Part shown: positions 2,852 to 19,826 of the stretch, one piece after another | How the letters are laid out: each line of letters starts with the position of its first letter | Numbering within the stretch: the first letter of the stretch is position 1 | Assembly (NCBI GenBank): GCA_950097015.1 | Contig: CATNEN010000001.1 | Coordinates: 17,670,001-17,734,000 of the forward strand | Length of the DNA stretch: 64,000 nucleotides | Origin: Macrostomum hystrix | Lineage: Eukaryota; Animalia; Platyhelminthes | Direction: 5' to 3' | Program-made: the position numbers and the translations under genes | Notes under the pieces: model-generated | What the model saw: only the letters and a program-made list of their open reading frames with translations | The model's database searches: none | What the model was told of the DNA's origin: nothing

Positions 2852-4603
2852 TCATACATCGGTCTCGAAGCAAGCCACGCTGCTCTTGTTAGAGTTGTGC
2901 TGCTGCTGCTGCTGTGCGTGATTTTGCTTGACCGAAGGTTGCGACTCCGAGCGGTGCATCGAAAGCAGATTGGCTTCGGTGACGGCGTCAACTTCCGACG
3001 CTTCTGAGGCCCGACTCCCCGACACCAGCGAGTTTTTCCTGCTGTCCTTGTAGGCCGGGCACGACTGCACGTGAACGTAGGTCTGCTTGTCCTCCGACTC
3101 AGTCTCCCGGTGGTAGAAGTAGTTGAAGTTAGACACGATGACTGGCACCGGCAGGGCGATCGTGAGCACACCGGCGATGGCGCACAGGGAGCCGACCAGT
3201 TTGCCCCACACCGTCACTGGCCGCATGTCTCCATAGCCGACGGTTGTCATGGTGACTACGGCCCACCAGAACGCCGATGGTATCGAGTCGAAGTGCGACT
3301 TCTCCGCTGAGTCGGCCTCGGCAAAGTACACAGCCGATGAGAAGAGGATTACGCTGATGAAGAGAAAGAAGACCAGCAGGCCGAGCTCTCGAACCGAGGC
3401 TTTGAGCGTCTGTCCAAGGATTTGCAGCCCCTTGAAGTGCCGGCTGAGCTTGAAGATCCTGAACACTCGAACCAGACGAATCACCCGCAGCACCGCCAGC
3501 GACATCGCCTGGTTGCTCCTGCTGTCGTCCGCTATCACCGTGCCCAGCGTGATGAAGTAGGGAATGATGGCCACAATGTCGATCAGGTTCATGATGTTCT
3601 TGAAGAAGCCAATCTTTGCCGGTGAAGATGCAAACCTGACAAGCAGCTCGAATGTGAACCAGATGATGCAGACTGTCTCAATGACGAAGAAGGACTCTCC
3701 GAACTGCGGTATGTCATCCTCCTCGATTACTTGGCTGGTGGTGTTTCCGTAGGTCTCGTTGATCACCTTGTAGTGCCGGAAGTGGGGCAGAGTCTCCACG
3801 CAGAAGATCACTATGCTGAGCAGGATGACGCACACTGAGATGATGGCGATCACGCGGGCTGCCATGGAACTCTCGGGGTACTCGAAAAGCAGCCACACCT
3901 TTCGTTGGAACTCATTATCCGGCAGCACCTTCACCTCCTCCTTGATGAAGCCTTCGTCGTCGCGGTATTTCTCAATGGCGTCTTCACCCAGCTCGTAGAA
4001 GCGGATCTCCTCTGTGAAGACGTCGATGGGCACGTTGACGGGTCGTCGAAGCCTGCCGCCGCTCTGGTAAAAGTACAAAATAGCGTCGAAAGAAGGCCGA
4101 TTGCGGTCGAAGAAATACTCGTTGCGCAACGGGTCGTAGTAGCGATTGCGCTTCTGCGAGCTTCCCAGCAGAGTCTCGGGAAACTGGTTCAGCGTTTTTA
4201 GCTGCGTCTCAAAGCGTAGTCCGCTGACGTTGATGACCACGCGGTCGCTGTCAAACGCCCTTGAAGCCGATTCGTCAAACTGGTTTTGTTGAAGATGCTG
4301 ATTGTGCTGCTGCTGCTGCTGCAGTTGCAGTTGCCCTCCAGCGGGGTGAGCTGTTGTTGGCGACATGTCATCGGGGTGAAGATCTTCGCCCGGTCTAGAC
4401 AGCTGAGATGGCGGCATCTTCGGGTAGGATCTGAAATGAATCGGAGTTCCTGGCTGAGACTCCTGCTGATACTGCTGATGCTGCTGATGCTGCTGATGCT
4501 GCTGATTGTGGGGCTTGTGGTACAGATGGTGCTTGTAGCTTGTACCAGGGATATCGGTACAACTGCCACTTTCTGTAGAGAGGCCAGCCATTGCCGCCTC
4601 CAT
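2852..4603 (-). CDS. Sh: Voltage-gated K+ channel, Shaker/Kv1 family (proximal unspliced isoform starting MEAAMAG)
   Basis: T1 domain ([13 protein letters not shown]...[15 protein letters not shown]), S4 ([18 protein letters not shown]), selectivity filter TVGYGD, S6 PVP motif and C-terminal PDZ ligand ETDV. The first ATG is at 4603; the track's 4684 start is not ATG. MEAAMAG resembles the MEVAM start of Aplysia Kv1 and mammalian Kv1.4. Confidence 0.97.
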
Positions 4604-4955
4604 GGCGTCCTGACAGTCTTCAGGGGCTCGCCGGCCCCTCAGACAGCCCAAGCACAGACACGGAGAGGCCGGAGGGAGAATCAAGGTCAGATGCGGACTG
4701 AGAGAGAACTCTTGCGAGTGGAATATTCAAGTGAAACAGCTGGTCACGCGGGACGGCTCAGGGGAGACACAAAGCGGGTCTCTCGTGGCCTGTGAGGCGC
4801 GGCTTCAGCGTCACTTTTCGATGGATGGCGGACTGGCCAAACCCTAACCCGCCTGTCGCAGAGGTCCGCGTTTCTATCCGTCCAGTATCAGTTGCTAGCC
4901 GGCTATTTCCCAATCTTGGGAGAATATTGGATTGGCTAGTGGCTTGGAGGTGGCG

Positions 4956-5147
4956 GGGTTGGAGGGGAGCAGAGAGAGGAGGCTGCTATTTGAGAAGGCG
5001 CTGAGATGAATAAAATGCCCAAAGAAAAAATGCCGTCAGCATAACAGACTAGCGCCGGCTTCTGAGTCGAGTATTCGACTCGAATAAAAGTCGACTCAGG
5101 CCAGAGTTTGAGTCGGGGCCATGAACTTGAACCACTTGATCTCCGGC
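4956..5147 (+). repeat. 192-bp perfect inverted repeat, arm A
   Basis: Base-by-base reverse complement of 9326-9517. Confidence 0.95.
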
Positions 5148-5840
5148 ACCTCCGATTGTTGGAGGTGCCAGCTGCCGGGGTTTCAGGGGCGCCGGGACGA
5201 GGAAAGAAAGAATTCTCGGAGAAGAGCAGAACTTGCGGGGGTGAGAAGCTGAATGCGATACGCGAGTGGCTGATCGCATGCTGCTGCTGCTGCTGCTGCT
5301 GCTGCCTACTCTGCCTCCTCGACCCGTCCTAGCCGCTGCTAGGGAAAAAGTGACTTGATTAGGCCGAGTCTCTGACCCCCCTGACTGGTCTATCTGGGAT
5401 TTCTCGGTTGGGGAAGTGAGTTGGGGGATGCGACAGGGCGGAGTTGGGTCTTCGACGATCCTGATCCCGTTTCTGTCTATCCTGTCCGTCTGTGTGACTG
5501 GCCAACACACACACACACAACTTGGAGCAGAGCCAATGGACAGGGTTCGGGTCAAGTAAAAGACAGAGAGGGAGAGAGAGGGGACAAATTAGATGGGGAT
5601 CCTGGGCTGCACAAATATCCCAATATCCCACTATGTTTTTTCTTCCCCTCTCTCAGCTGTCACAGCTGTAATAGGCCTAACTTTGTTAGCCTCAGCCATT
5701 GGCACAGACTCCAGACTGCTCCAGAAGGGGCAATTAATCTCCCTGCTCAATTATCCTTTGTGTTGTGAGCAATTAGGAAAAAGTATCCCAATTAGTTTGT
5801 GTTTAATATTGGCCGAGATTATTTACGAAAATTGCCATTT

Positions 5841-6891
5841 TCGGGATCGGGATCAGGGATCGGGATCAGGGATCGGGATCAGGGATCGGGATCAGGGATC
5901 GGGATCAGGGATCGGGATCAGGGATCGGGATCAGGGATCGGGATCAGGGATCGGGATCAGGGATCGGGATCAGGGATCGGGATCAGGGATCGGGATCAGG
6001 GATCGGGATCAGGGATCGGGATCAGGGATCGGGATCAGGGATCGGGATCAGGGATCGGGATCAGGGATCGGGATCAGGGATCGGGATCAGGGATCGGGAT
6101 CAGGGATCGGGATCAGGGATCGGGATCAGGGATCGGGATCAGGGATCGGGATCAGGGATCGGGATCAGGGATCGGGATCAGGGATCGGGATCAGGGATCG
6201 GGATCAGGGATCGGGATCAGGGATCGGGATCAGGGATCGGGATCAGGGATCGGGATCAGGGATCGGGATCAGGGATCGGGATCAGGGATCGGGATCAGGG
6301 ATCGGGATCAGGGATCGGGATCAGGGATCGGGATCAGGGATCGGGATCAGGGATCGGGATCAGGGATCGGGATCAGGGATCGGGATCAGGGATCGGGATC
6401 AGGGATCGGGATCAGGGATCGGGATCAGGGATCGGGATCAGGGATCGGGATCAGGGATCGGGATCAGGGATCGGGATCAGGGATCGGGATCAGGGATCGG
6501 GATCAGGGATCGGGATCAGGGATCGGGATCAGGGATCGGGATCAGGGATCGGGATCAGGGATCGGGATCAGGGATCGGGATCAGGGATCGGGATCAGGGA
6601 TCGGGATCAGGGATCGGGATCAGGGATCGGGATCAGGGATCGGGATCAGGGATCGGGATCAGGGATCGGGATCAGGGATCGGGATCAGGGATCGGGATCA
6701 GGGATCGGGATCAGGGATCGGGATCAGGGATCGGGATCAGGGATCGGGATCAGGGATCGGGATCAGGGATCGGGATCAGGGATCGGGATCAGGGATCGGG
6801 ATCAGGGATCGGGATCAGGGATCGGGATCAGGGATCGGGATCAGGGATCGGGATCAGGGATCGGGATCAGGGATCGGGATCAGGGATCGGG
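5841..6891. repeat. Homogeneous 13-bp minisatellite (GGGATCGGGATCA)n, ~80 copies
   Basis: Read directly from the sequence. Confidence 0.98.
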
Positions 6892-7379
6892 AGCGTCACA
6901 ATAATGTAACATAGACCCATCTGAGTTGTCTATCTCGATTTCCGCTCGAAGCAGTGGACAGCAGGAAGTGAGGAACTCACGTCTTTCTAAGAAACGCCGC
7001 CAGGAACGCAGCCATAACGGGCCCTACAGCAGCTTTTTGCGTTTAGAAATTTGCCTCATTCTATGTTTTTCTAGCTAAAATATATCTACAGGGCCTGTTT
7101 CAGATTATCAGTCGGGAGCAAATTTTATACCGATTTTTGTTCGAATTGCAAAAAAACACAACCCTATTTTTCATATAAGCTTAGAGCTACGATCGTGACG
7201 AATCGCGTATTAAGCAGGCTCCCACCCAGTGGCCGCTGTTGCTTTTAGGCAAAACCATTTACTGAATCAGTTTCACACGCTCGGCTTGTTGGTTGGACTT
7301 CCACAATGGGATCCAAATGCGAGTTTGAGTTGAATTAGAGTTAAAAATAAGCAGTTAATCTACACAAAGAAGCAGAATA

Positions 7380-19127: not shown

Positions 19128-19451
19128 TCACGCACCATGGACCCTGAGCTCGATTCCGCGGCGAGGCCACACTCATTTGGGGCGCAGCCGCGGAGAGAAG
19201 GCTTGGGGGCTTGTCGTGCAATTTACGCCATTGAGGGCCAACCTCCAAGGCACAGTGAGAGGTACACTGCCTGACGATGAGACAGTCAGGGCAGATGTAC
19301 ACACCTGTGTGAGCGTATGCCTGCGTTAGGTATCTGTGTGCATGTGTGCTCAGGAGTCAGCGAAATGGGCAGAATTGCCTCCTCGCTGGCTGCGGGTCTA
19401 GTGTCACCAAATGATGTGCCATTGCCCGCAGCCCTCCTGCAATTATTATTC
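19128..19451 (+). mobile_element. tRNA-derived SINE copy with (ATT)n tail
   Basis: B-box-like GAGCTCGATTCC, shared body, tail AATTATTATT. Confidence 0.82.
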
Positions 19452-19539
19452 ATATTTATTTATCACTGATTCACTCACTGAAGTGAATCTGTTCTTTTGT
19501 GATCTCCCCCACCGTGAGTCAGCTGTCCAGGTCACTCAC

Positions 19540-19736
19540 CTGCTGTCTGATTTGCTTCGGCTCATCGTACTGCGCGAGTTCACTGGCATCAATGACGAAC
19601 CGAAGCTGCGTCGAAAGCCGAACGCAGAGTTCAGGCCATAGAAGCCGCCGATCCCGCCACCGCCGCCGCCGCCGCCGCCGCCGCCGCCGCCACTGCCGCC
19701 GCCACGAATCCTGATGCTCTGGCTTCGACCCCACAT
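19540..19736 (-). CDS. Candidate alternative first coding exon of Shaker (MWGRSQS...GGFYGL...KSDS)
   Basis: ATG at 19736, open frame, strong donor CAG|GTGAGT in phase 2. Confidence 0.55.
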
Positions 19737-19800
19737 TGGATGGAGCTGTGGCAATCTCAGTTGCTGGGTGAATCTTTTCAGCTTTCCGATGCGCACTTAC

Positions 19801-19826
19801 CTCAAAACAGCCATTACCCAGCACAT
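19801..19826 (-). CDS. Candidate very short alternative N-terminus of Shaker (MCWVMAVL-R)
   Basis: ATG at 19826, then 8 codons plus AG, then consensus donor GAG|GTAAGT in phase 2. Confidence 0.45.

Follow-up and report, generated by a model that had tools for sequence, protein, structure and literature searches.

Can a gene that reads as one uninterrupted coding exon draw on upstream exons for a different N-terminus? N-terminal 'balls' set the inactivation speed of Shaker-type channels and hence shape neuronal firing. The question is raised by a Kv1/Shaker gene in a 64,000-nucleotide stretch of the Macrostomum hystrix genome (contig CATNEN010000001.1, positions 17,670,001 to 17,734,000; hereafter the window). 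A preliminary description had listed its open reading frame (ORF), a start at MEAAMAGL, a splice acceptor at 4431/4430 within the ORF and four upstream segments ending in phase-2 donors, and all of these are present in the sequence as described. Here, we report that upstream phase-2 exons probably supply alternative N-termini at the acceptor within the ORF, and that the junction is apparently the one used by fly Shaker.

The Kv1 gene and its internal acceptor

Three features of the gene itself set the frame (slashes within splice-site and junction sequences mark the boundary; positions are those of the window unless a contig is named).

2852..4603, minus strand: collinear Kv1/Shaker ORF, uninterrupted between its ATG (4603) and its stop (2852), 583 amino acids plus stop, MEAAMAGL... 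to ETDV
4433..4603, minus strand: proximal N-terminal segment, joined without a break to the core; a diverged Kv1AnID-type start
4430..4440, minus strand: internal 3' splice site ttcatttcag/A, phase 2; first base of the common exon at 4430

Membership in the Kv1/Shaker subfamily is indicated by a T1/BTB_2 domain (Pfam, 1.4e-27) followed by a six-transmembrane Ion_trans domain (Pfam, 5.6e-52), by the TVGYG pore signature and the C-terminal Kv1-type PDZ ligand ETDV in the translation, and by the closest relatives, which are Kv1 proteins. In protein database searches, the top matches are Kv1/Shaker proteins of flatworms, molluscs and insects; those of M. lignano are closest (83-85% identity), followed by mollusc Kv1 proteins at about 76%. 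Searches of the species' own assembly (220 Mb, 42 contigs) show that the window locus, paralog A, is one of three close Kv1/Shaker paralogs in the genome, the others being paralog B (contig C37, minus strand) and paralog C (contig C38, plus strand). Sequencing runs X3-X6, of unspecified kind, contain 52-85% of the words of the Kv1 coding sequence.

Prince and Pfaffinger (2013; PMC3634772) defined a conserved MEVAM-type N-terminal domain, Kv1AnID, in genes that are usually single-exon. Like such genes (Aplysia AKv1, vertebrate Kv1.4), the window gene has a collinear ME(V/A)AMAG start with Glu at position 2, a coding region readable as a single exon, and the conserved 'Block 2' (NSR-SFPK) and pre-T1 blocks. 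The definition also asks for a charged residue at position 9; unlike the canonical domain, the window start (MEAAMAGLS) has Ser there, and the GNGGP block has been lost.

The internal acceptor splits an Arg codon (AGA) directly before SYPKMPPSQ. It ranks 4th among the 132 AG sites within the coding sequence and falls within the top 1.7% of the 4215 AG sites on the strand. Homologous acceptors are found in paralog B (ccctgttccag/G, at the same codon) and in paralog C (ctcgcttacag/A, before SHHHQP). A common 3' splice site immediately before an S[LFY]PK block, as in Shaker-type alternative N-terminal systems, is thus present in the window gene. Used as a first exon, the long Kv1 exon would be translated from MEAAMAGL and carry the diverged 'ancestral' Kv1 inactivation domain; used as an internal exon, it would be entered at the phase-2 acceptor 4430, just before SYPKM, and the proximal segment 4433-4603 would be skipped.

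An upstream exon conserved ahead of a paralog

In the second case, other N-termini would come from upstream exons, each ending after two bases of a codon. Four candidates lie on the same strand.

9093..9352, minus strand: alternative first coding exon MNLNHLISGG, 86 codons plus AG, donor CAG/GTAGCT, phase 2
7856..8092, minus strand: candidate symmetric cassette exon, 237 nt (a multiple of 3), ccgcag/G ... AAG/GTCAGT, phase 2 at both ends
19540..19736, minus strand: candidate distal first exon 1b (MWGRSQSIRIR...), 65 codons plus AG, donor CAG/GTGAGT, phase 2
19801..19826, minus strand: candidate distal micro first exon 1a, MCWVMAVL plus AG, donor GAG/GTAAGT, phase 2

At least two upstream ATG-initiated coding exons with a phase-compatible donor, another hallmark of a Shaker-type system, are present, the MNLNHLISGG exon by paralog conservation and the candidates 1a and 1b by sequence only. 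The MNLNHLISGG exon would serve as one first exon, segment 8092-7856 is probably a 237-nt cassette of optional use, and the two distal first exons at 19.8-19.5 kb are possible additions. Because every junction is phase 2, any combination of these exons would stay in frame.

Support for the MNLNHLISGG exon as a channel N-terminus is strong. Paralog B has a counterpart 6.7 kb upstream, ahead of a cassette of its own: an ATG-initiated exon (C37:328895-328753) that likewise begins MNLNHLISGG and ends in phase 2 at CAG/GTAGGA. The decapeptide is identical in the two exons even though 6 of the 30 nucleotides differ, all of them synonymously, and the flanks on both sides of these 30 nucleotides cannot be aligned. 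Allowing one mismatch, a degenerate back-translation of MNLNHLISGG finds exactly two matches in the 220-Mb genome (reversed control, 0), both on the correct strand and 5-7 kb upstream of a Kv1 core. From this comparison, purifying selection acts on the first ten residues of the exon only, a pattern that would be expected of a putative ball-and-chain N-terminus. A codon-frame score, trained on coding sequence of the neighbourhood, also ranks the proposed frame of 9352-9093 first, higher than the 95th percentile for random intron pieces. A search of the exon against 5.8 billion clusters gave no match. MNLNHLISGG is a short, strongly conserved new N-terminal peptide, directly testable for pore block.

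We also observe that the donor of the paralog B exon lies in about 4-5 tandem copies of a 26-nt unit (C37:328650-328760, minus strand), each repeating ...gatgacag/gtagga, which makes an array of duplicated donors.

Probable use of the homologous acceptor in paralogs B and C

Paralog B is the ortholog of M. lignano P0005/P0006 and begins MEVAMAGIEQGNGGP...CSR/SFPKM, with the canonical Kv1AnID start MEVAMAGIE. Paralog C begins MEFAMAS... Each has an exon upstream that can be compared with M. lignano proteins.

C37:327248-327075, minus strand: paralog B cassette, 174 nt, tttcag/A ... CA/GTAAGT, phase 2 at both ends, 5 kb upstream
C38:26817557-26817667, plus strand: paralog C cassette, 111 nt, phase 2 at both ends, 5 kb upstream

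Translated, the paralog B cassette matches the alternative N-terminus found in M. lignano P0006/P0243, where the sequence goes on ...EQ/SFPKM (alignment score 95, versus a shuffle mean of 24.5 with a standard deviation of 4.8). The M. lignano N-terminus begins exactly at the first full codon of the cassette, and the codon formed across the paralog B junction, CA plus G, encodes the Gln seen in the M. lignano protein. The paralog C cassette matches the N-terminus of M. lignano P0007 (shuffle p about 3e-4); no first exon was found for this paralog within 26 kb. Since M. lignano N-termini match exons upstream of both sister genes, we infer that the acceptor within the ORF is used in paralogs B and C. 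Together with the switch point seen in other protostomes (below), the paralogs support the idea that one locus joins a collinear MEVAM-type start to upstream phase-2 exons able to reach an acceptor in the ORF.

At residue 201/202 of P0005 (C37:321635-321637), the core of paralog B changes frame by one base, which reflects a frameshift, an assembly indel or a decaying copy; slightly upstream of this break, disturbances are present in the M. lignano models P0005 and P0121 as well.

The candidate cassette and distal exons

For segment 8092-7856 as a cassette feeding the channel, support is fair. No other symmetric open cassette with phase 2 at either end has both site scores so high in 128 kb (both strands), and about 0.04 cassettes of such quality would be expected in its 4.7-kb interval. 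The proposed frame scores best by codon usage, again above the 95th percentile of random intron pieces, and the validated cassettes of paralogs B and C, also symmetric and phase 2, occupy the matching position.

The distal exons stand out mainly by their donors. Sites 19801 and 19540 are the only ones between 4.7 and 25 kb that score at least 7 with a position weight matrix (PWM), and they make up two of the seven such sites in the whole window on both strands. Three plus-strand donors of equal strength all close real exons of the neighbouring cadherin/adhesion G-protein-coupled receptor gene. Exon 1b holds the strongest donor of the interval (19540), in the right phase, and by codon score its proposed frame comes out first, exceeding 95% of random intron pieces. 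Homology searches returned little for either exon. Exon 1b gave only weak matches with stop codons in the species' own genome and one glycine-run match among 1.84 billion representatives; patterns of the exon 1a and 1b N-termini matched only themselves; and a tblastn search of the window with 75 homolog N-termini gave low-complexity matches only. The support for these two as candidate exons for channel N-termini consists of donor strength, phase and, for 1b, codon score.

The preliminary description had likened the distal exons to known Drosophila balls, and here our results diverge from it. The GFYGL motif of exon 1b, proposed as a ShB-like ball, lies about 30 residues from the N-terminus and has only YGL in common with ShB, so that the analogy fails. 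The proposed likeness of the eight residues MCWVMAVL (exon 1a) to ShC finds no backing in a homolog.

A junction apparently in common with other protostomes

How old is the junction? Among 240 fetched homologs, compared at the protein level (gene structures were inspected in the source genome), N-termini switch exactly before S[FYL]P[KR] in mollusc, brachiopod, insect and M. lignano proteins. Identity after the junction is as follows.

Mytilus P0037 versus P0039: 99.6%
Crassostrea P0032 versus P0218: 96.7%
Pomacea P0050 versus P0048: 95.6%
Lingula P0068: alternative N-terminus before the junction; a single protein, without an identity figure
M. lignano P0005 versus P0006: 94.5%
Athalia (insect), six different N-termini (isoforms X1-X8): 99.8-100%

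Residues whose codons have only pyrimidines at the third position occur directly before the junction in none of 40 distinct non-collinear tails, against a background of 24%, and half of these tails end in Arg. Both observations are as expected if, following an ...AG/ donor, the common exon contributes a purine as the last base of the codon. At the level of protein sequence, they support one conserved phase-2 intron position at the junction in protostomes, and with it the earlier proposal that the junction is homologous to that of insect Shaker. The Drosophila N-termini of the preliminary description, joining at SLPKLSSQ, are confirmed by database proteins: P0184 reads MAAVAGLYGL...GYG/SLPKLSSQ and P0074 reads MQMILVAGG/SLPKLSSQ.

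Insect Shaker is known for its alternative 5' exons ShA-ShH (Schwarz, Kamb and Pongs 1988, as cited in PMC3519636 and PMC3634772). As proposed for the window gene, several alternative N-terminal exons are spliced to a single common exon directly ahead of S[LFY]PK, the residues before the junction are compatible with a phase-2 intron, and the expected role is the tuning of N-type inactivation. The two systems differ in architecture. In insect Shaker each N-terminus has its own exon, the core is cut by many introns and there is no MEVAM-type domain; the window gene keeps one N-terminus joined to a core that is otherwise unsplit, and would accept symmetric cassettes.

Molluscs and a brachiopod offer another parallel, with predicted Kv1 isoforms that are near-identical after the junction; ahead of it they have either a short N-terminus of MEVAM type or a long alternative one. 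The long N-termini have PPxY and (S/T)xPLL motifs, which are absent from the flatworm exons. PPxY-like (PPSY/PPPY) and acidic (S/T)xPLL motifs lie shortly before the junction in P0019, P0026, P0032, P0037, P0042, P0044, P0050, P0055, P0056, P0068 and P0126. Judged by sequence, they suggest a signal for trafficking or for a ubiquitin ligase more than a ball that blocks the pore. Squid SqKv1A/B/D, said to go back to Rosenthal et al. 1997, are reportedly Kv1 channels with an unsplit core whose cDNAs differ at the extreme N-terminus.

In the published view, complex alternatively spliced Kv1 structure arose in Ecdysozoa, with loss of the AnID (PMC3634772), and intronless cnidarian and chordate genes have been contrasted with protostome splicing (Jegla et al. 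2012; PMC3519636). Our literature search found no paper on alternative N-termini of AnID-type genes. Unlike the simple Kv1AnID genes of PMC3634772, the window gene and the mollusc isoform models have a Block 2 that is apparently also a splice junction. The window locus, its paralogs and the mollusc and brachiopod models indicate that a collinear ball and spliced alternatives coexist in Lophotrochozoa. Because the position of the junction, and apparently its phase, are as in insects, the switching system would be pushed back at least to the protostome ancestor. The system is of a known kind, but the lineage is new for it, and it runs counter to the published picture of AnID-type genes as single-exon; the evolutionary message, that a collinear ancestral ball and spliced alternatives coexist outside Ecdysozoa, is a modest one. 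The suggestion that ORF-based annotation misses such N-termini holds only in part: they are already present in NCBI isoform models for molluscs and in UniProt models for M. lignano.

Alternative interpretations

Several points weigh against alternative N-termini at 4430. Our interpretation rests on sequence comparison, not on RNA from the window locus, and the searched protein databases held no protein from the source species. The M. lignano gene models are predictions, partly 5'-truncated, and the frame break at C37:321636 means that paralog B may be decaying or mis-assembled. In sequence, the window cassette shows no significant similarity to the cassettes of paralog B and M. lignano (p 0.11 and 0.017) or to that of paralog C, nor does it have a detectable homolog otherwise; exons 1a and 1b are likewise without a detectable homolog in the genome or in the representative library, and exon 1a, which when unspliced is a 9-codon upstream ORF ending in the TAA of its donor, could be a mere upstream ORF. 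The 9093 donor is weak by the generic PWM (2.1), although this matrix is unreliable as a filter, with the validated paralog B donor ACA/GTAAGT scoring only 3.3. Despite the weak donor, and a start codon inside one arm of an inverted repeat (see below), we accept 9352-9093 as an exon because of its conservation in the paralog.

One alternative is that the gene is just what it appears to be, an intronless one, in which the AG at 4430 merely resembles an acceptor and goes unused, and the open segments upstream are chance ORFs. Segments of the required form are indeed common, with 257 ATG-open phase-2 GT segments between 4.7 and 25 kb, and three of the four upstream segments are ORFs that end exactly in AGG plus a stop, which always mimics a phase-2 donor (AGG-TAA, AGG-TGA and AGG-TAG alike). 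The lack of homologs for exons 1a and 1b also speaks for this reading. Against it stand a decapeptide under purifying selection that two of the paralogs share ahead of their cores and that is absent from the rest of the 220 Mb, M. lignano proteins that point to use of the homologous acceptor in paralogs B and C, and the status of the cassette and of both distal donors as outliers by statistics. We regard an intronless gene as extremely doubtful. It is also possible that 4430 serves mainly as a spliced-leader trans-splice site, in which case the first AUG would be the Met of SYPK-M (window 4416-4418), the product a ball-less, non-inactivating channel, and the upstream exons of little consequence. 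Paralogs A and B both keep this Met, in a position that is Leu in other phyla, and M. lignano models P0242 and P0121 begin exactly there; the Met could be the start codon of a ball-less isoform, made for instance when a spliced leader is added at 4430. Those two models may, however, be 5'-incomplete predictions, and P0006/P0243 and P0007 show what appear to be cis-spliced N-termini at the same site. Trans-splicing as the main use of the site is therefore fairly unlikely in our judgment, and it could coexist with cis-splicing.

A more serious contender concerns the distal exons alone: they may be real but belong to another transcript (a non-coding RNA, a small unannotated gene or an untranslated leader containing upstream ORFs), so that only the MNLNHLISGG exon and the cassette feed the channel. 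Exons 1a and 1b lie 15 kb from the core, versus 5-7 kb for the validated upstream exons of paralogs B and C, and have no counterpart within 38 kb upstream of paralog B; the short upstream ORF formed by unspliced exon 1a and the presence of another gene on the same strand just upstream, at 25.7-28.2 kb, point the same way. Yet the phase of both donors is the only one compatible with the channel, the interval from 19.5 to 9.5 kb shows no other coding exon, just satellites and repeats resembling short interspersed elements, and the codon score singles out the proposed frame of exon 1b. On balance we would bet slightly against a separate transcript. Whichever holds for the distal exons, splicing of upstream N-termini to 4430 would, by analogy with Shaker, give channels that differ in N-type inactivation or in trafficking.

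Repeats and neighbouring genes

The start of the MNLNHLISGG exon lies within a perfect inverted repeat of 192 nt.

9326..9517, no strand assigned: distal arm, comprising 165 nt upstream of the MNLNH start codon and the first 27 nt of the exon
4956..5147, no strand assigned: proximal arm, 350-545 nt upstream of the MEAAM start codon

The arms are 4178 nt apart. The sequence has only two copies genome-wide, on which ground we rejected a transposon, and no conserved counterpart was found in paralog B. The repeat may have arisen by a recent inverted duplication or be an artefact of the assembly, or it may form an RNA stem in long pre-mRNAs. It enters a broader scenario, in which the protostome ancestor had an all-phase-2 modular system (first exon, optional cassette, core) together with a collinear ancestral ball that insects later lost; MNLNHLISGG would be a new class of inactivation peptide; and in pre-mRNAs from a distal promoter the arms would pair, looping out the MNLNH exon and the cassette and joining the distal exons to 4430, an RNA-structure switch of the N-terminus. 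Taken as a whole, this scenario is very improbable.

The putative introns are full of mini- and microsatellite arrays that are near-perfect, have periods of 4-31 nt and reach 140 copies. A short interspersed repeat of about 170 nt, with copies 80-95% identical, occurs in the introns of both the window gene and paralog B.

Window 5843-6892, 7380-7742, 8152-8330, 10378-11078, 11543-12655: satellite arrays
Window 13749-14258, 14639-14859, 17864-18513, 20255-21642, 22239-22942: further satellite arrays
Window 19131-19301, 16592-16735, 8349-8444 and C37:330075-330246, 353268-353526: copies of the short interspersed repeat

The separate gene upstream on the same strand occupies 25753-28161 (minus); positions 29127 and 31699 resemble donors. 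Its ORFs are 169 and 292 amino acids long, without a Pfam match, and it includes a Q-rich exon that is entered near 26432. A match to the paralog B cassette at 26.3-26.4 kb was rejected as poly-Q inside an exon of another gene. Further along, on the plus strand, a CELSR/Flamingo-like adhesion G-protein-coupled receptor gene spans 33600-63900 (cadherin repeats, laminin-EGF, HRM, GAIN). It is broken by an intact-looking Ty3/gypsy-type retrotransposon on the minus strand (47788-52279), with reverse transcriptase, RNase H, integrase and a gag-like ORF.

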